A stretch of 64,000 bases of DNA from positions 124,001-188,000 of the IMG/VR virus record IMGVR_UViG_3300027759_004177; one strand, written 5' to 3'. Positions 2,057 through 64,000 of the stretch are shown piece by piece. Below the pieces are notes generated by a model. It was not told the origin of the DNA, made no database searches, and worked only from the letters and a program-made list of their open reading frames with translations. The position numbers and the translations under genes are program-made. How positions within the stretch are numbered: position 1 is the stretch's first letter; every line of letters begins with the position of its first letter.

Positions 2057-4477
2057 TTAAAAGCCAGCGGCTTTGAGTCTTGCTGCCAATTGATCTAAAG
2101 CACCACCAACTGTGCTCACATTTGATGTCCAGTTTTGATAGTTGGCCATGGTGTAACTCACATTGGTCAATACTGTTAAACTACGTGCTGTGATGTTTCC
2201 TACGTTGGCATTGCCTGAAGTGTAGTTGAACTCAATAAACTTGTTGTCAAAGGTATCATCATTTTTGTAGATACCAAAGTGTGAATGTGGGCCTGTGCCG
2301 CGATTGTCTGTTCCGGTGCTGGCAGCGTCCCACCAAGCATAACCTAAAATAGTACTGCCACGCTGTGTGCCAGTGTTGTTTCTAAAGTCGATACTGATGT
2401 TGCCGGTGTTGTCTCCGGTACCAGGGCTACCATCACCAATGTGCAACCAGTATCCAGGATTGGTATTGTTGATACCGGTGTAGTCTTGTATGGCTATTTC
2501 GCCAGAACCGGCCGAGTTTAAGATAATGCCATTGCTTGCTCCACCTGCTGTACCAATTGTGGTGTCTGAGAATGTCAGGTTACCTGCTGTGGTAAATGAT
2601 GAGCTGTAGTTTGTACCATTGGCCCAGAATATTCCGCTGGATGTTATGATATTGCCTAGATTGGCCAGGCCGAACGCATCCACAGTACGGATGTTGCCCA
2701 CAATGGCTTGGTCGTAGATCAGGGCTGTGTTGGAAGCTATATTACCGGTTTCGGTTAGTGGTGTTTGTACGCTGGTTCCTGCCAAAATAAAAGTTGCGGA
2801 TTGTATATTACCACTAGTGAATAATTGTTTCCACTGCTTGCTGGCGCTACCAATACTGTACGTGTTATTAGTTACTGGAATCAAATTGCCCACAATGGCA
2901 CTCAAGTTGGCCACCGGAGCTATCAACACATTCGACGCTGTGATGTTGGCACGTAGGTTACCAATTTCCACGTTGGCGGCTGTGGTATTTGCTGTAGTAA
3001 TTAAGTTGAAGGACGTGATCGTGGCATTGGCAGCTGTGATGTTGGCACGTAGACTATTAATTTGTACGTTGGCCGCTGTGATGTTGGCACGTAGGCTACC
3101 AATCTCTACATTGGCCGAAGCTACATTGGCATTTACAACTGTTATTGCTGTGCTTTGTGTAGCAGCATTGGCAAACAAAGTAGTAATATTAGTAGTTGCT
3201 GTGCCAAGATTGGCATTGATAGTATCAATTTGTACAGCCTGTGTTACAGCGTTGGCTGTCCAGGCTGAGGTCACTGTGTCAACATAACTCTTCATGCCAG
3301 TGTTGGCTGTGATGATGGCCGCATTGGCAGCTGTAATGTTGGCACGTAGGTTATTTGTGTCTGTATATCCGGTGGCAATGTTAGTTGTGGCTGTACCCAG
3401 ATTAGCGTCTAAGGTAACTATTCTGGCATTGGCAGCAGTTACATTGGCATTGATTGCAACAACTGAAGGTAAATTGGCCTGCAAGCTGGCCACATTCGTT
3501 TGTAAACCGACGATGTTGGTAGTAGCTGTGCCAAGATTGGCATCGATGGTGTTGAGCTGACTGCCTTGTGCGACTGCGTTAGCAGACAACGCAATTAATT
3601 CAGCAACCTGAACTTGTGCATTGGCCTGCAAGGCTGCAATGGTCACTTGTTGTGCCACAGTATTGGCTGTCAGTGTACCAAGGGTGTCTGCTTGTGCAGC
3701 AGCATTTACTGTAAGTACCGCCAACGATAGGGATTGTGTAGCAGCGTTGGCAGTTAGAGTGTCTAAGGTTGCGGCTTGCGTGGCCGCATTGGCCAACAGG
3801 GAGGTAATATTTGTTGTGGCTGTGCCCAAGTTGGCATCCAGGGTAACTATTCTGGCATTGGCAGCAGTGACTCTATTGGTATTGGTTGAGATGTCAGTGC
3901 TTTGTGTGGCAGAATTGGCCAACAGAGTGGTAATATTTGTTGTGGCAGTACCTAGGTTAGCATTAATAGCTATGTTGGCCGATATCAAACTGGTCACGCT
4001 GGTATTGACACCGCCCAAGTTTGCTTCAATATTTTGTATGCGTAGATTAGCCGCAGTGACATTGGCATTGATTTGCGCCACATTGGCATTGACCGGTGCA
4101 AGTGTATTGCCAGAAACTATCAATGCATTGGCAATACTGGCAATATTACTGGATAAATTTGCACTGACCTGGGCATACACATTGGCAGTGATGTTACTGG
4201 TGGTTGTTGCGTACAAGGTATTGGCGTAAACATTGGCTGCAGTGGTTTGAGCAATAACGTTGGCCAAGCTGGCAGCGCCTAAAATATCATTTGTATACAG
4301 CGTGATGTTGCCTGTGCGTCCAGCCACAGTTCTTACTGGTGCATCAACGGTGATATTGGCATTACCTGCGGTAATATTAGCAAAATTTAAATTGATTATT
4401 TCAAATGCGTGTCTTAGCGTGTCACCCGTTAAATCGTTTGGAGCGGCACCTAAGTAGACGTTTGCAAAAGTACTCAT
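2057..4477 (-). CDS. Tail fibre/baseplate-attached fibre protein
   Basis: N-terminal LGAAPNDLTGDTLRHAFEIINLNF resembles the T4 gp9/gp10-type anchor; long A/N/T coiled repeats; late promoter upstream. Confidence 0.8.
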   Translation of the reverse strand: MSTFANVYLGAAPNDLTGDTLRHAFEIINLNFANITAGNANITVDAPVRTVAGRTGNITLYTNDILGAASLANVIAQTTAANVYANTLYATTTSNITANVYAQVSANLSSNIASIANALIVSGNTLAPVNANVAQINANVTAANLRIQNIEANLGGVNTSVTSLISANIAINANLGTATTNITTLLANSATQSTDISTNTNRVTAANARIVTLDANLGTATTNITSLLANAATQAATLDTLTANAATQSLSLAVLTVNAAAQADTLGTLTANTVAQQVTIAALQANAQVQVAELIALSANAVAQGSQLNTIDANLGTATTNIVGLQTNVASLQANLPSVVAINANVTAANARIVTLDANLGTATTNIATGYTDTNNLRANITAANAAIITANTGMKSYVDTVTSAWTANAVTQAVQIDTINANLGTATTNITTLFANAATQSTAITVVNANVASANVEIGSLRANITAANVQINSLRANITAANATITSFNLITTANTTAANVEIGNLRANITASNVLIAPVANLSAIVGNLIPVTNNTYSIGSASKQWKQLFTSGNIQSATFILAGTSVQTPLTETGNIASNTALIYDQAIVGNIRTVDAFGLANLGNIITSSGIFWANGTNYSSSFTTAGNLTFSDTTIGTAGGASNGIILNSAGSGEIAIQDYTGINNTNPGYWLHIGDGSPGTGDNTGNISIDFRNNTGTQRGSTILGYAWWDAASTGTDNRGTGPHSHFGIYKNDDTFDNKFIEFNYTSGNANVGNITARSLTVLTNVSYTMANYQNWTSNVSTVGGALDQLAARLKAAGF

Positions 4478-4508
4478 TGTTTTAACCCTATTATAGAGTA
4501 TTTATCGA

Positions 4509-5894
4509 TTAGTACGTTTGTTTCCACCCCGTTATGGTCTTGGTCCAGATAGCTTTGACGTTTGACCAGGTATTTGTGGCAGTTTTTACCTTGACATTGG
4601 CTACATAACCCCAGGTATCGGCGGCTGTTTTAACAGTTGTTCCGCCACTGGATACCATTTGATAAACTACATTACCGTATGGAACACCTACACCAGTTAC
4701 TGGATCCCAATTAGAACTTGCGGCGTATCCTGTAGTTAACAGGCTTGCATTATTTCCTGTTAAAATATCGTAGTACGCATTGAGATTTCCGTATAGTATA
4801 GGATGTATAGCATTAGGTATCGGACGTCGACTAGTTAAAGACGTATATCTAGCAAACATACCAGCCATAATAGGTGCGGCAGCACTTGTCCCAGACACAG
4901 ACTCAACTCTACCTATGTTATTTCCGCTATAAGTCATCCATACTCCGTAGGCGTTCATAGCTGCGGCAATATCTGGTACACCACGACCAATATCAGAACT
5001 TATAGTACCGCTAGTTAATGTAATATTTGGCCCATAAGAAGAATTAGAAGCAAAATATTTTCTATAGGTTAATCCATTTTGCCAAGTTGGTACTGCAATC
5101 ATTGAACTTATACCACCCGAACCACCAAAACCCGGTGTATTACCAATTTGACTATTATTATAAACTGTTTCGTTTGAACGTAACGTATTACCAGAAAATA
5201 CCGATAAATTGGTGCCTCCCACTGCTATCACATTGTGATTAGTTGATGGATAGTCTACTGTTACAATATTTCCAGTTAGTGTGGCAGAACTACCATAATC
5301 TCCAGCAGCTATAAAAACTGTAATTCCCTTAGCAGAAGCATTTGACAACGGTACTGCTAAAAAATCTCCGCAGTAATAATTTGGATATACGTTACTGTAA
5401 ATTTCTCCAAGGCCCCAACTAATGGTAATGATATCACAATCTTCATCCACTGCTCGTTGTATAGCATTACCAAAACTACTAGTTCTATTGGTAATGTTTG
5501 CTAACGTAACATTAGAACTATATGTAATGGAATTGTTATTGCCTTTATACAATACAATATTAGCTTTTGGGACCATACTAGCAACACATACTAAATCTAA
5601 CATATTTTCTACATCGTTGCTAACGCCATTATAACTATTAGTAGCACCATCAACACCAACAAATGTTACAGTGGGTGCCGTTAAACTTATATTTGCTAAT
5701 GATTTACTAAGATCACTTTGACTAAACCCGCCGTCTAGACTAATAATACCAACTTTAACATTGGCTCCGGTGTTAATAGGAATATTGTATGCTGTTGCTA
5801 CCTTAGGTCCAGTAAGTAAGGAACCCTCGCTAATGCTACTAGCGTGTGGTAATGCTTCAACTGAAGTTATATACGAGGATACGTTAGCTATCAT
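4509..5894 (-). CDS. S53 (sedolisin/kumamolisin-like) serine peptidase with virion-type C-terminal tail
   Basis: ENMLD (Glu/Asp), AAGDYG oxyanion Asp, RGVPDIAA, SGTSAAAP catalytic Ser, WDPVTGVG calcium-site motif. Confidence 0.9.
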   Translation of the reverse strand: MIANVSSYITSVEALPHASSISEGSLLTGPKVATAYNIPINTGANVKVGIISLDGGFSQSDLSKSLANISLTAPTVTFVGVDGATNSYNGVSNDVENMLDLVCVASMVPKANIVLYKGNNNSITYSSNVTLANITNRTSSFGNAIQRAVDEDCDIITISWGLGEIYSNVYPNYYCGDFLAVPLSNASAKGITVFIAAGDYGSSATLTGNIVTVDYPSTNHNVIAVGGTNLSVFSGNTLRSNETVYNNSQIGNTPGFGGSGGISSMIAVPTWQNGLTYRKYFASNSSYGPNITLTSGTISSDIGRGVPDIAAAMNAYGVWMTYSGNNIGRVESVSGTSAAAPIMAGMFARYTSLTSRRPIPNAIHPILYGNLNAYYDILTGNNASLLTTGYAASSNWDPVTGVGVPYGNVVYQMVSSGGTTVKTAADTWGYVANVKVKTATNTWSNVKAIWTKTITGWKQTY

Positions 5895-59166: not shown

Positions 59167-59655
59167 TTAGAAAGTGTATTTAAAATTCATTCCGGTATAA
59201 GTTGCTTTGTCGTAAGTTCCTTGTTGCCATAAAAATGTGCTTATACAAGCACTAAATTTGGTTTCATCAAATCTTCTGCATACTTGTCCGAATACCATTG
59301 CTTTGGTTTCGTGGTTCCATCTAGATGTTTGATACCCGGTTGAAATCTGTGGTGTCAAGTGTATACTCCAGTTGTTTTTTGACCATACATCAAATGTGGA
59401 CACAAGACTTTTAGCAGTTCTTCCCATACTGTTATTGTTTACTTTGACTCCGATGGCAATGACATCTGTAAAATAATATCCAACACCAACACCAAAATTC
59501 ATGTTGTCTCCACCAAAGGAAGCACGAGTGGTCTCTTTTTCCCAGTGGTACCCAGGACCAATTGCTTGAATATACATATCGCCCTTGTTGCCGGCTGATG
59601 CCAAATTGGAAATTGTTAGAGCACTCAAAAACAGCAAAAAATAAATTTTTTTCAT
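59167..59655 (-). CDS. Secreted beta-barrel outer-membrane-protein-like (PagP-like)
   Basis: Signal peptide MKKIYFLLF..ASA, amphipathic strands, terminal F (FKYTF); promoter at 59686-59714. Confidence 0.65.
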   Translation of the reverse strand: MKKIYFLLFLSALTISNLASAGNKGDMYIQAIGPGYHWEKETTRASFGGDNMNFGVGVGYYFTDVIAIGVKVNNNSMGRTAKSLVSTFDVWSKNNWSIHLTPQISTGYQTSRWNHETKAMVFGQVCRRFDETKFSACISTFLWQQGTYDKATYTGMNFKYTF

Positions 59656-59718
59656 TTTATATCTCAATTAGTTTATCGAGTTTAAATTATATATTAAAAT
59701 TTATTATAGGTCAACCTA

Positions 59719-59792
59719 TGGTGCCCCTTGACAGAATCGAACTGCCAATTGATGATTACAAATCAACTGTTATACCATTTAACTAAAGGGGC
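59719..59792 (-). tRNA. tRNA-Thr(UGU)
   Basis: GCCCCTT acceptor stem, loop TTTGTAA, GTTCGATTC T-loop, encoded CCA. Confidence 0.93.
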
Positions 59793-59817
59793 CGTATAAA
59801 ACTGTATTTTACTTGTT

Positions 59818-60345
59818 TTAGTTGGCTTTGTCAATGAGATCGGTTAAAACAGCGTTACCCGATACTTTTCTGTATCTGTGCGATTGACTTTTAAGTATCT
59901 CCAATGGAGCACTTTCTTTAAAAGGGTTGTGCCAAATACGTTCTGGTTCACCGTTGTTAATAATAATCACATATTGCCAGTATCTGGCCAAATCAAATGT
60001 TTCTTTTTTGTACTTATAATGTTCTGCCAATGCTTGCACAAATGCCATGTCTCTGTCAGGTAGCCCTATTAAGGTTGGTGCTCTCTTTTCAATGTGCGGC
60101 CCTATTAACCAATCCGTTGAGTCAACTACATAAATTTTGTCAATGCCTAATTCTTTAAACTGAGCGTAGTTACTTGTAAAACTGTCTAGTTGTAACCCTG
60201 AACACATTGTACGAAAATTTGTTAAAGAAAAAACAATCACACGGAGATTGGCAAACAGATCATCATAATCAAATGTTGCTATCTGATTATGATGAAATGT
60301 TTTAAATGTTAGTTGTTTAAGTGTTTGTTGAAACAGTGAGTTCAC
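59818..60345 (-). CDS. Degenerate peroxiredoxin (Prx5/redoxin-like)
   Basis: DDLF...RVIVFSL...CS..QL, GIDKIYVV, LPD....F, Y..IINNG. Confidence 0.7.
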   Translation of the reverse strand: MNSLFQQTLKQLTFKTFHHNQIATFDYDDLFANLRVIVFSLTNFRTMCSGLQLDSFTSNYAQFKELGIDKIYVVDSTDWLIGPHIEKRAPTLIGLPDRDMAFVQALAEHYKYKKETFDLARYWQYVIIINNGEPERIWHNPFKESAPLEILKSQSHRYRKVSGNAVLTDLIDKAN

Positions 60346-60348
60346 AAA

Positions 60349-61335
60349 TTATGCTTTGATAATTCCGTCGATTAGGCCTGGATAGAAGAAGTCGCGATAC
60401 TTGTCGTATAGCGGAGCAACAGCTTGTTTGAATTTATCTGTATCTTCTTTGTTTAGTTCTGTGTAAGTTACGCCAATGTCGCTGTGATCTTTTTTAGCAG
60501 CAAACGCTTCAGCTTCCTCAACTGACCACTTGCGTTCTAGGCGACTAGCGTATTTGCATGCTTCGCTAAACTTGGCTTGTTCATCTTCGCTTAATGTAGC
60601 TAAGAATTTGTTGCCAATAATAATACTAGTCAAGAACAAATTGTGTTTGGTGTTGACCATGTACCTCTTGCTTGTATTCTTGAACTGTGCTAGGTACCGT
60701 GGAATAGTTGTTTCGAGAGCATCGGCACCAATGCCTTCTTGTTTGAAAAAGTCTGGGTCAAGATATAGATCTCGCATTGAAAAAACTTGCGGAATAGCAC
60801 CAATGGCTTCGCAAGTGTCAACAGTTACAGGATTATTTGTTGTGGCGAACCCAATACCGCTTAGACTATCTAAATCGCTGATTGGTTTTTCGCTAACGAT
60901 ACAGCGGAATCCACCTGAATATGTAAACTCCATACCTATAGCTGGACTTTTGTCTTTTAGGCCGTCTAACATCTTACGACCAATTGGGCCTTCTAGTACA
61001 CGTTTTGCATGATCGTGATCTTGGAAAATAAACGGCATTTCCAATGCCAAAAACTCCGGGCTATGCCAACGAGCTAAATCAACAACATGCATTTGACTCA
61101 TTTGAATATCGCCGGAGTCAATTAACATCATTGGGTCAGCTTTAAAAGATAATGATGAATCTCTCATTTTTTTGTCAGGATATTTGTTGCTGTATTCTTT
61201 TAAAGTAAAAATTTCTACTTCAAATTTGCCGTCGGTTAATTCGGCAATTTTTTCTTTAAATGCTTCGGCTGTGCGTAGGAACAAATTTATAGGTTCGTGT
61301 GCGATTAACCAGGTGATTTTTTTCTTTTGATTCAT
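60349..61335 (-). CDS. TRAP transporter DctP-like solute-binding protein lacking a signal peptide
   Basis: F...I.ELTDGKFEVEIF, GDIQM, LEMPFIF.D.DHA..VLEGPIG, GFR. Confidence 0.82.
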   Translation of the reverse strand: MNQKKKITWLIAHEPINLFLRTAEAFKEKIAELTDGKFEVEIFTLKEYSNKYPDKKMRDSSLSFKADPMMLIDSGDIQMSQMHVVDLARWHSPEFLALEMPFIFQDHDHAKRVLEGPIGRKMLDGLKDKSPAIGMEFTYSGGFRCIVSEKPISDLDSLSGIGFATTNNPVTVDTCEAIGAIPQVFSMRDLYLDPDFFKQEGIGADALETTIPRYLAQFKNTSKRYMVNTKHNLFLTSIIIGNKFLATLSEDEQAKFSEACKYASRLERKWSVEEAEAFAAKKDHSDIGVTYTELNKEDTDKFKQAVAPLYDKYRDFFYPGLIDGIIKA

Positions 61336-61388
61336 GGGATTCTCCAATAGGATTTTGTATTATATATTTATACTTGCGCCTAGGATTC

Positions 61389-61680: not shown

Positions 61681-62056
61681 CCCAGCCCTGTCCGGAAATT
61701 GCATGGAACCAGGGATAAAATGAGCTGGGGATATCAAACTGCCATGTACCTTCCTGATCAATCCATGCTGTTGGTGGCTGTGCCAAATGTTGATATCGTG
61801 GTAATACTTCTGTACCGTTTACTGTTAGCGATTTGATTTCAACTGCACCGCCACGAGGTTCAATTACACGACACTTTAAATGCACAGAAGATAGCAAATC
61901 AAATGTGTGTATTGTATCTGTTTCGGCAATTAAATGTCCATTGAGACGCATACGATAATGTATGTTGCCGTGGGCAACTATGACCAATCGTACTTGCAAT
62001 TGATCCGGGGTTTTAATATCCAATACGTCGGAGAAAGTGTTTATATCTTGGTGCAT
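61673..62056 (-). CDS. Hypothetical protein associated with the radical SAM gene
   Basis: Overlaps the rSAM end; W.F.I..SFYPW.H..SGQGW. Confidence 0.65.
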   Translation of the reverse strand: MHQDINTFSDVLDIKTPDQLQVRLVIVAHGNIHYRMRLNGHLIAETDTIHTFDLLSSVHLKCRVIEPRGGAVEIKSLTVNGTEVLPRYQHLAQPPTAWIDQEGTWQFDIPSSFYPWFHAISGQGWVA

Positions 62057-63308
62057 AATCTAGTATCGTGTTGTTCCTGATTGTTTCAAAACTTTTTAAG
62101 AAACTGACTAATTCTTTCAGTGATTCCTCTGCATCTGCAGGCGGGGTGTATGTTTTAACAAACTCCAGGTACTCAGTGGCCAACTGTGCAATAATCTCGT
62201 GACTTAAATCACTTCTGCGAGTATTCACTTGCGGAGTATACGATCCTAATCGATCAACCACAGCCTGTAACTTTGCAACGGTTTCTTGTCTGATATCGTC
62301 TGGCATCAGTTCCATACGCAAACAACGTGGTTGGTGCAATATGTTACAGCTCTCGGCGATAATGTTGTGTTCGATCATGAACTCAAAAACTTGGTCCAGT
62401 TCGCTGATAGTAAACAAGTTAGGAGTGATACGTAGTTCTAGTTTTAATCCGGGATTACGATCACGCAAGGCCACAAACTTGAGAATGTTTGCCAAGATCT
62501 GATCAGTAGGTCCTGGATAACGCACATAATCGTTTAATGACGTAACTGACTCTATACTGATACCTAGATGAAACTCTTGGAATCTAGGTATCAATTGTTC
62601 TATACGTTCATCGTATATTGTGCCGTTGGTAGTTGTGCCAACTATTAGATCTTGTCCATCCAAGTGCTCGCAAATGTCGTAGAAGGCTTGATTATATAAT
62701 GTTTCTCCACCCAGGAAGTGTATGTAACGTATGTATGGAAACGATTTTAACTCTGCAACAAAGCGATTGACTGTTGCTGAATCTTCAGTCCAAGACTGAT
62801 ACGGCTTGGGTTCAGCAAATAATCGACTATCCAGCTTGTTTAATTTTTTATAGTCTGCAACAAGACGTGAGCTTGCTGTGGGGTCGCACATGATACAGGC
62901 ACTATTACAAGTATTACCTAGGTCTATTTGTAAATCTGTTGGAAAATGTGGGCTGGCACCCGCATGACTGTTGCTGTATTCAAATACAGGCAAGTGTGGG
63001 CTAGAACGAAAGGTTAATGGAAACTCTGCAAGACCAATAGCACTTTTGTTTAGTTGTCTAACACGACCCGAAAGTTTTCCAAACTGATCTTGGTAGTAAC
63101 AAGGCTCACACTCTTTGGGTTTGTTGCCGGCTAATAGTTGTTGACGCAGGTCTCTCATGGGCCCACTGTTGTAAAAATCCATCAGCGAAGTTGTGCGTAT
63201 GTTGAAGGCGGTAGCACCGTTTTTGCTCCAGCGACACACATCATAACTACCATCGTAAGTTAATCTAATGTGGAACCAGGGACTTGAACAGAATGAGTCT
63301 TTTAACAT
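62013..63308 (-). CDS. Radical SAM protein with N-terminal twitch/SPASM domain
   Basis: FCSSPW..C...CEPC, then CNSACIMC, GGET, TTNGT, YVRYP. Confidence 0.88.
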   Translation of the reverse strand: MLKDSFCSSPWFHIRLTYDGSYDVCRWSKNGATAFNIRTTSLMDFYNSGPMRDLRQQLLAGNKPKECEPCYYQDQFGKLSGRVRQLNKSAIGLAEFPLTFRSSPHLPVFEYSNSHAGASPHFPTDLQIDLGNTCNSACIMCDPTASSRLVADYKKLNKLDSRLFAEPKPYQSWTEDSATVNRFVAELKSFPYIRYIHFLGGETLYNQAFYDICEHLDGQDLIVGTTTNGTIYDERIEQLIPRFQEFHLGISIESVTSLNDYVRYPGPTDQILANILKFVALRDRNPGLKLELRITPNLFTISELDQVFEFMIEHNIIAESCNILHQPRCLRMELMPDDIRQETVAKLQAVVDRLGSYTPQVNTRRSDLSHEIIAQLATEYLEFVKTYTPPADAEESLKELVSFLKSFETIRNNTILDYAPRYKHFLRRIGY

Positions 63309-63315
63309 AATTATA

Positions 63316-63405
63316 TGGCGGAGAGTGTGAGATTCGAACTCACGATAGTGTTGCCACTATGCCGGTTTAGTAGACCGGTGCCTTCAGCCGCTCGGCCAAC
63401 TCTCC
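63316..63405 (-). tRNA. tRNA-Ser with ACU anticodon
   Basis: GGAGAG acceptor stem, long variable arm, G73, encoded CCA; stem CCGGT/ACCGG with loop CTACTAA. Confidence 0.9.
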
Positions 63406-63432
63406 ATAAATACTTTTTTATAAAGGCAAAAC

Positions 63433-63708
63433 ATGAAAAAATTAATATTTCTATTGGCAACATTCTTTTGTGTTTCTGCCATGGCTTTTACTACTCAAAA
63501 ACCTGTTGACTGTTTTGGAACACCTGAAGTTACCAAAATGCTACGAGAAGAATTCAACGAAGTCATCATATTTGACAGTATCAACAACCTGACCGGCAAA
63601 AGCAGAATTTCTTTGTTTGTAAATTCTAAAACTGGAACATGGACCTTGGTTGAATACGACAACGACAATGCCTGCATTTTAGGTGCTGGTCAAAGTCGTT
63701 CCACCTGA
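63433..63708 (+). CDS. Small secreted protein
   Basis: Signal peptide; KPVDC...N..TGTWT.VE.....CILGAG; ATAAATA and AAGG upstream. Confidence 0.75.
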   Translation: MKKLIFLLATFFCVSAMAFTTQKPVDCFGTPEVTKMLREEFNEVIIFDSINNLTGKSRISLFVNSKTGTWTLVEYDNDNACILGAGQSRST

Positions 63709-64000
63709 CTGACTTCCACGCCCGACTTAGTTAAAAAATCAACGCCGGTGGTATCTCTGTAGGCTGTGCCAAACCACACCCGAGCTATACCACTTTGATA
63801 TATCAGTTTGGCACAGTCTAAGCAAGGGCTGTGAGTAACAAATAGATCAGCACCATGCCCAGACTCATTGCTACGTGCCAGTTTTGCAATAGCATTTGTT
63901 TCAGCATGGAGAACTTCTGGTTTGGTTTTAAGTTCATGATGTCCATCCTCTCTAAGTTCTATTATTTCTTCGCAGTCATTGTCCCAACCGGCGGGCATGC
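63690..64000 (-). CDS. dCMP deaminase (5' part outside window)
   Basis: HAETNAI and SPCLDCAK zinc motifs. Confidence 0.92.
   Translation of the reverse strand, partial: MPAGWDNDCEEIIELREDGHHELKTKPEVLHAETNAIAKLARSNESGHGADLFVTHSPCLDCAKLIYQSGIARVWFGTAYRDTTGVDFLTKSGVEVSQVERL

Follow-up and report, generated by a model that had tools for sequence, protein, structure and literature searches.

A phage-encoded serine tRNA with an ACU anticodon: structure, distribution, and proposed decoding role

Results

Locus and genome context

The stretch of DNA analyzed here (the window, 64,000 nucleotides) covers positions 124001–188000 of a 356,865-bp IMG/VR record with 42.7% G+C, the source of which is a freshwater jumbo phage. 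The tRNA-Ser(ACU) gene lies on the minus strand at 63316–63405, flanked on the same strand by a radical SAM protein gene downstream and a dCMP deaminase gene upstream. The radical SAM protein (62013–63308, 431 amino acids) has an N-terminal twitch domain and matches NCBIfam NF033640 with 231.7 bits as well as the Pfam families Radical_SAM and SPASM. Distant homologues of this protein are about as frequent near Ser(ACU) genes (4 of 93 loci) as near Ser(GCU) genes (3 of 109 loci), which gives no specific association between the tRNA and this neighbor. The dCMP deaminase (146 amino acids) occupies 63690–64000 and runs on to 64130, past the window end. In PDB, it matches deoxycytidylate deaminase 4p9c best (E 1e-36), whereas TadA chains match only at about 1e-5, and it scores 34 bits against the TadA model NF008113, which has a cut-off of 150. 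Since this is the sole deaminase-fold gene in the genome, a phage-encoded TadA beside the tRNA is rejected. Between the tRNA and the deaminase gene, the opposite (plus) strand carries a 91-amino-acid open reading frame (63433–63708) that matches no Pfam family and whose N terminus resembles a signal peptide (MKKLIFLLATFFCVSAMA). A promoter and terminator scan gave nothing on the tRNA strand.

The phage genome contains 12 tRNA genes, 11 called by ARAGORN and a tRNA-Tyr found by Rfam. The tRNA-Ser(ACU) is the only tRNA-Ser among them, and all 11 ARAGORN-called tRNAs end in CCA. The other tRNA in the window, tRNA-Thr(UGU) (59719–59792, minus strand; ARAGORN, and Rfam with 65.3 bits), reads ACA, the commonest Thr codon of the phage. 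Two further RNA-like features lie outside the window. One is a tRNA-like gene with an encoded CCA (G000:C1:195463-195538, minus strand, also at L013:4705-4780), in which a 6-nt loop, UUACCG, closes a 5-bp stem; ARAGORN is undecided between Val and Gly ('ac'), and the Rfam score is 41.2 bits. The other is an ARAGORN call of a permuted tmRNA-like gene (G000:C1:71983-72379, minus strand) with the tag peptide ANDEQFALAA; a different tmRNA-like call is found in viral contig L016.

Host-like genes for a beta-barrel-like outer-membrane protein, a redoxin-like protein, and a DctP-type TRAP solute-binding protein (Pfam 1.4e-36) surround tRNA-Thr(UGU) on the minus strand (59167–61347). The DctP-like gene gives no support to a Polynucleobacter host, its best match in three Polynucleobacter genomes having 26% identity, and Polynucleobacter as the host is only a lead. 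Outside the window, a 317-amino-acid secreted protein (G000:C1:190105-191058, minus strand) looks by eye like a Bug/TctC-type tripartite tricarboxylate-binding protein. Bug/TctC-type genes are typical of Burkholderiales, and this protein may hint at the host.

Structure and identity elements

The gene encodes a 90-nt class II tRNA. ARAGORN assigns the minus strand of 63316–63405 to tRNA-Ser(act), and Rfam RF00005 matches 63319–63405 over the full length of the model (56.4 bits, E 1.6e-10). The 3′ CCA is encoded at 63316–63318 and is preceded by the discriminator G73 at 63319. Folding of the minus strand gives a cloverleaf whose variable arm is long (−34.7 kcal/mol, z −3.15). The first half of the RNA reads GGAGAGU-U-G-GCC...GGC-A-CCGGU-CUACUAA-ACCGG-C, and the second half reads AUAGUG-GCAA-CACUAU-C-GUGAG-UUCGAAU-CUCAC-ACUCUCC-G-CCA. 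The stems are a 7-bp acceptor stem, a 3-bp D stem, a 5-bp anticodon stem, and a 5-bp T stem, and the variable arm AUAGUG-GCAA-CACUAU consists of a 6-bp stem and a 4-nt loop.

In the anticodon arm, CCGGU-CUACUAA-ACCGG, positions 34–36 are ACU, encoded as AGT on the plus strand at 63369–63371, where A34 corresponds to the plus-strand T at 63371. The sequence-only reading of a tRNA-Ser with the loop CU-ACU-AA thus agrees with ARAGORN, Rfam, the cloverleaf, and the sequence itself. Because the loop has 7 nt with U33, the anticodon can only be A34-C35-U36; this register excludes a suppressor anticodon (CUA, UCA, or UUA), which is also contradicted by the normal decoding of AGA and AGT in NrdA.

The bacterial serine identity set tabulated in PMC9976931 is complete, with G73, G1-C72, G2-C71, R4-Y69, C11-G24, and G30-C40. 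The versions in phages Hallingskeid and 7t3 have A73 where the window gene has G73. By its structure and identity elements, the window feature is a bacterial-type class II tRNA-Ser. These elements also suggest that SerRS would charge it with serine.

Independent occurrences of the anticodon

The sequence-only reading had named reads showing GCU as the sign of an assembly error at 63371; contigs from other studies that cover this base (L013, X1, and X5) all carry ACU and none carries GCU. Over 14,239 bp, the record is 100% identical to IMG/VR contig L013, which comes from another metagenome, and the stretch is present in 20 public runs from nine studies, mostly labeled as freshwater metagenomes. 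A 13.4-kb Logan contig of run X1 spans the region with 15 differences, none of which falls at 63369–63371. Six of them convert the T stem from GUGAG/CUCAC to CAGGG/CCCUG in a compensatory manner (63327/28/30 with 63340/42/43), and three fall in the variable arm of the tRNA. The X1 strain co-occurs at about 99% identity, and its T-stem and variable-arm changes (63327–63355) give the version seen in viral contig L021. The contig of run X5 covers the anticodon unchanged. Evidence from RNA runs consists of assembled Logan contigs, with a single shallow RNA-library contig over the anticodon: this contig, X19 (63365–63515, depth 2), is unchanged at 63371, and it extends past the mature 5′ end and may represent DNA or a precursor.

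Distribution of tRNA-Ser(ACU)

The sequence-only reading had named a singleton as a refuting outcome; instead, ACU is carried by more than 100 IMG/VR contigs and by several lineages of cultured phages. The exact 17-nt anticodon arm with ACU is found in 14 IMG/VR contigs, and all 14 are tRNA-Ser(act) genes; the same arm with GCU is found in two. A looser pattern, which combines the loop CTACTAA, class II spacing, and the T arm GGTTCGAATCC, matches at least about 120 contigs. Among the 116 new loci listed, 93 were validated as Ser(act), so that at least 93 more are added, with at least 68 unique sequences and at least about 38 distinct, internally complementary anticodon stems. The false matches to this pattern mostly overlap tRNA-Glu genes. 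In an unbiased scan with either purine at position 34, the first 80 matches listed in database order contained 9 validated ACU genes versus 63 GCU genes. Thus, ACU accounts for roughly one in eight of the AGY-reading Ser tRNAs in the sampled viral contigs, a ratio that refers to tRNAs with the searched T arm and to a sample, not a census. Ser(ACU) and Ser(GCU) occur together in one viral contig (L014), and most ACU phages are without Ser(GCU) nearby.

BLAST searches of cultured phage genomes followed by ARAGORN identified Ser(act) in Xanthomonas phage XaC1, Erwinia phage Hallingskeid, Salmonella phage 7t3, Ralstonia phage RP13, and Rhizobium phage RHph_TM2_3B, the GenBank record of which is already annotated "tRNA-Ser(act)". 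Judging from identical BLAST scores, phages SE_PL, Munch, fENko-Kae01, and PHA46 probably share the gene of Hallingskeid and 7t3, and four sibling phages probably share that of the Rhizobium phage. Annotated genes in the cultured carriers include RNA ligase and polynucleotide kinase/phosphatase in 7t3 (L070, 111612–114425) and RNA ligase and tRNA nucleotidyltransferase in XaC1 (L069). A tRNA-His guanylyltransferase is also annotated among these two carriers.

In species-representative bacterial genomes, a 20-nt arm is found in 11 contigs, all 11 of them with tRNA-Ser(act); seven are titled Polynucleobacter, and the remaining four are metagenome-assembled genomes of uncultured betaproteobacteria or Burkholderiaceae. 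In Polynucleobacter sp. 71A-WALBACH, the ACU gene is an extra gene beside a complete Ser set (CGA, UGA, GCU, and GGA). Genes beside the Polynucleobacter copies include those for a tyrosine integrase in L037 (locus 3195–4658), an HNH endonuclease in L047, and a P63C phage-domain protein in L040. In the integrase-adjacent copy of L037, the acceptor stem is mismatched and chimeric, as is expected at an integration site. Extra tRNA-Ser(ACU) loci of Polynucleobacter also include L038, L042, L043, and L045, and strain JS-Safj-400b-B2 has four ACU copies, three of which lie beside tRNA-Gly(CCC), two of these together with tRNA-Thr(CGU). The Polynucleobacter loci resemble a mobile tRNA cassette or a hot spot for integration.

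Conservation and origin of the family

The family alignment comprises 21 distinct sequences, drawn from the window and from viral contigs, cultured phage genomes, and bacterial genomes. Standard pairs fill 98.7% of the 544 stem cells versus 76.6% in shuffled alignments, and changes on both sides are seen in 22 of 26 pairs, including covariation of all six variable-arm pairs. None of 500 shuffles reached any of the observed pairing measures, and pairing falls to 28–47% when the 3′ partners are slid along. All 21 sequences have the identical loop C32-U33-A34-C35-U36-A37-A38, including those of the five BLAST-found lineages, for which the search did not demand it. These observations establish that the tRNA-Ser(ACU) gene is real and under selection.

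With the anticodon masked, the ACU bodies share at best 0.66–0.89 identity with UGA-type Ser tRNAs (0.74–0.89 without L019) and 0.62–0.73 with GCU-type Ser tRNAs. The nearest cultured relative of the window gene is Ser(UGA) of Xanthomonas phage LucasX, at 85.6%. The closeness to the UGA type marks the ACU genes as a separate lineage in which the anticodon was re-specified. Consequently, the anticodon variant of the sequence-only reading is not a local point variant of tRNA-Ser(GCU) (0.74–0.89 versus 0.62–0.73), and a G-to-A point mutant of the host tRNA-Ser(GCU) is rejected, given the UGA-like body and the 2 GCU versus 14 ACU contigs that share the anticodon stem. The window tRNA-Ser(ACU) is a member of a large, old tRNA family of phages and mobile elements.

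Codon usage and genetic code

Codons were counted in a crude call of 363 open reading frames covering 91% of the phage genome. The Ser codon used most often is AGT, at 22.8 per 1000 and 36% of Ser, and with AGC (24%) the AGY codons amount to 60% of Ser. AGA and AGG represent 20% (9.0 per 1000) and 3% of Arg codons, respectively. The other phage tRNAs likewise match favored A- or U-ending codons, such as Thr UGU for ACA (40% of Thr). The ratio AGT/(AGT+AGC) is 0.61–0.86 in the window phage, viral contigs L014–L023, and the cultured phages (35–45% G+C), except for the prophage-like L020 (0.44), and 55 further ACU loci have a median of 0.70 (IQR 0.64–0.76).

Tuning of the tRNA to AGU-rich phage genes had been proposed. 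The abundance of AGT in this phage fits the proposal, but phages with Ser(GCU) are just as AGU-rich once G+C is matched: the median AGT fraction is 0.681 at ACU loci and 0.674 at GCU loci (p 0.38). AGA is not avoided at ACU loci either (12.7 versus 14.5 per 1000 at GCU loci, p 0.79). Codon usage is therefore rejected as a discriminator between A34 and G34, and codon demand alone leaves the choice of A34 over G34 unexplained.

The claim that AGA still encodes Arg in this phage is borne out by NrdA, in which the AGA-encoded R9 (in the motif VTKR), R345, and R428 align with Arg residues of PDB 7mdi_A. The AGT codons of NrdA align with conserved Ser residues. The Arg positions of AGA in NrdA indicate that the phage uses the standard code.

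Restriction of A34 to serine

For Phe, Tyr, His, Asn, Asp, and Cys, G34 is listed among the determinants of aminoacylation in bacteria, whereas serine identity "is independent of the anticodon" (PMC9976931). In tRNAs for those six amino acids at about 210 viral loci, 314 genes have G34 versus 6 doubtful calls with A34. The six calls look unreliable, since two of them are 96 and 102 nt long and a CCA end is present in one of the six. These ARAGORN calls, which may be false, are Asp(ATC) three times and Tyr(ATA), Cys(ACA), and Phe(AAA) once each (L139:5257-5332, L140:7020-7095, L099:13008-13081, L107:1462-1534, L155, and L194); L139 and L140 have an identical Asp(ATC) sequence. Single phages show the same restriction: phage 7t3 carries Ser(UGA) and Ser(ACU) but G34 in its Asn, Asp, and Tyr tRNAs, and phage XaC1 carries Ser(ACU) but G34 in its Asn and Phe tRNAs. 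Among the NNY split-box families, serine would thus be the only one whose charging does not suffer from A34, and A34, which the core tRNA sets of cells are without, would be tolerated only there because SerRS ignores the anticodon.

Discussion

Decoding by tRNA-Ser(ACU)

The best explanation, with a probability of roughly 55% in our estimate, is that the gene encodes a functional phage tRNA-Ser that supplements the host pool and reads AGU through a Watson-Crick A34:U pair. SerRS would charge this tRNA through its long variable arm, G73, and acceptor stem, with the anticodon not being read. On the ribosome, A34 would pair with the U of AGU in Watson-Crick geometry, replacing the G:U wobble of the host tRNA-Ser(GCU), and A37, which follows U36, is expected to carry t6A. 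Since TadA requires G36 and the loop CUACUAA has U36, A34 itself most probably remains unmodified for the most part. In that case, the tRNA would read AGU specifically and leave AGC to the host tRNA-Ser(GCU). The phage only adds to a complete host set, so that such a single-codon specialist would be affordable. Against such specificity, unmodified A34 is known to read beyond U in some contexts, such as Mycoplasma tRNA-Thr(AGU) and Salmonella proL mutants.

Experiments in Escherichia coli systems favor this decoding. In an E. coli lysate, tRNA-Pyl with an ACU anticodon read AGU more efficiently than the GCU variant (PMC6158751), and tRNAs with unmodified A34 discriminate U over C in E. coli (PMC5137457). 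Loop variants of a foreign tRNA that escape TadA kept A34 and read CAU with strong discrimination against CAC (PMC5137457).

If the host TadA converted A34 to inosine, the ICU anticodon would read AGU and AGC and, weakly, AGA, placing Ser at some Arg codons. The argument of the sequence-only reading that the motif preference of TadA disfavors this loop is upheld by the literature: TadA needs U33-A34-C35-G36, with G36 reportedly strictly preferred through base-specific contacts (PMC10586758), and the editing motif across 64 gammaproteobacteria is YUACGAA in a stem-loop, in which single changes abolish or nearly abolish editing (PMC12255301). The loop CUACUAA deviates from this motif at U36 only, so that it retains six of the seven positions, on a 5-bp stem. 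Under TadA overexpression, however, about 29% of the edited sites are one base off TACG (PMC12255301), and about half of a foreign AUG-anticodon tRNA is converted to I34 by E. coli TadA (PMC5137457). A broader reader would also be useful, given that most ACU phages are without a nearby Ser(GCU). On the other hand, a tRNA that misreads AGA sits poorly with the lack of AGA avoidance in ACU phages, and the coexistence of Ser(ACU) and Ser(GCU) in L014 suggests distinct roles for the two. The unchanged base at 63371 in the X19 contig, which may derive from DNA or a precursor, is at most a weak argument against inosine. On balance, we regard inosine at position 34 as unlikely.

Alternative explanations for A34

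Since codon usage does not tell A34 phages from G34 ones, some other selective factor is required, and evasion of a defense would provide one. A34 may have been selected mainly for resistance to an anticodon nuclease of the host or of a competitor, or to another tRNA-targeting defense, that recognizes tRNA-Ser(GCU), so that AGY decoding would survive the destruction of the host tRNA. Altered anticodon loops have been proposed to protect phage tRNAs from anticodon nucleases, and VapC is known to target UCN-type Ser tRNAs (PMC10264068). The relatives 7t3 and XaC1 carry annotated tRNA-repair genes, and the loop differs from that of Polynucleobacter tRNA-Ser(GCU) at position 34 only. However, no nuclease specific for tRNA-Ser(GCU) was identified in this analysis or in the cited literature. 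A search of the window phage with Pfam families found neither an Rnl1-type ligase nor a CCA-adding enzyme, though the Rnl1 model matched no control genome either. Moreover, the whole tRNA body differs from the GCU type, so that any resistance need not lie in A34. Evasion as the main cause of A34 is, in our judgment, rather improbable.

We give a similarly low weight to a wider reading, in which these genes form a large unrecognized tRNA class that breaks the A34 rule and in which an undescribed modification of A34, its retention for reasons other than codon supply, such as immunity to a defense against tRNA-Ser(GCU), or a tolerated or regulated misreading of Arg AGA as Ser in infected cells would be possible. 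The suspicion that ACU is an assembly or sequencing error, or that the gene is a decaying tRNA-Ser(GCU) pseudogene, was fair at first because A34 in the AGY box is described as universally missing (PMC8007984), but it is refuted by the identical base in contigs of other studies, by the ACU genes in more than 100 further contigs and in cultured phage and bacterial genomes, by the strong covariation, and by a body that is not GCU-like.

Relation to known tRNAs

The family resembles bacterial tRNA-Ser(GCU) in its class II structure, long variable arm, G73, loop C32-U33-N-C35-U36-A37-A38, and codon box. It differs in A34, the CCGGU/ACCGG anticodon stem, a shorter variable arm, and the UGA-like body, and the tRNA-Ser(GCU) that Polynucleobacter sp. 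71A-WALBACH has in addition to its ACU gene is likewise distinct from it. With tRNA-Arg(ACG), the window tRNA shares the encoded A34 within U33-A34-C35, A37-A38, a 7-nt loop, and a 5-bp stem, whereas it has U36 in place of G36. The boxes that the two tRNAs serve also differ: tRNA-Arg(ACG) belongs to a four-codon box, in which I34 is harmless, whereas ACU belongs to a split box, in which I34 would also read an Arg codon.

The engineered ACU orthogonal tRNAs of Cui et al. (2018, PMC6158751) similarly read AGU by full Watson-Crick pairing, but they are synthetic tRNA-Pyl and tRNA-Tyr scaffolds in a lysate, whereas the window tRNA is a natural, conserved Ser tRNA. Those authors called ACU non-native and removed AGA and AGG from the template as a precaution (PMC6158751). 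A tRNA-Ser(ACU) on a horizontally acquired element is also present in tRNA arrays described for Acidithiobacillus (Tran et al. 2016, PMC4758250); the gene is noted there only as an insertion/deletion difference of two arrays, its anticodon passing without remark, and the likeness drawn here is one of description. This passing remark is the sole prokaryotic mention of tRNA-Ser(ACU) that we found in the open-access literature, and we found no open-access paper linking phages to it. The nuclease-evading phage tRNAs of van den Berg et al. (2023, PMC10264068) resemble the window tRNA in an anticodon loop that differs from that of the host; the changes in those cases lie outside the anticodon, whereas here the wobble base itself is changed.

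Implications

ANN anticodons in split boxes, except for Ile, have been described as universally missing, and phage tRNAs have likewise been described as free of the "prohibited" genes (PMC8007984). The tRNA-Ser(ACU) is of a known kind, a phage-borne supplementary tRNA, in a form that the literature treats as non-existent. A conserved and diverse family, found also in cultured phages that infect laboratory hosts, contradicts the universal absence of A34 from split boxes in the case of serine. If its reading is indeed specific for AGU, the tRNA would offer a natural AGU-specific decoder to genetic-code engineers. The family also provides a natural system in which to ask why a wobble A is excluded from two-codon boxes, with misreading, editing by TadA, and synthetase identity as candidate causes. 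With A34 confined to serine, synthetase identity is likely to be a major constraint among these.
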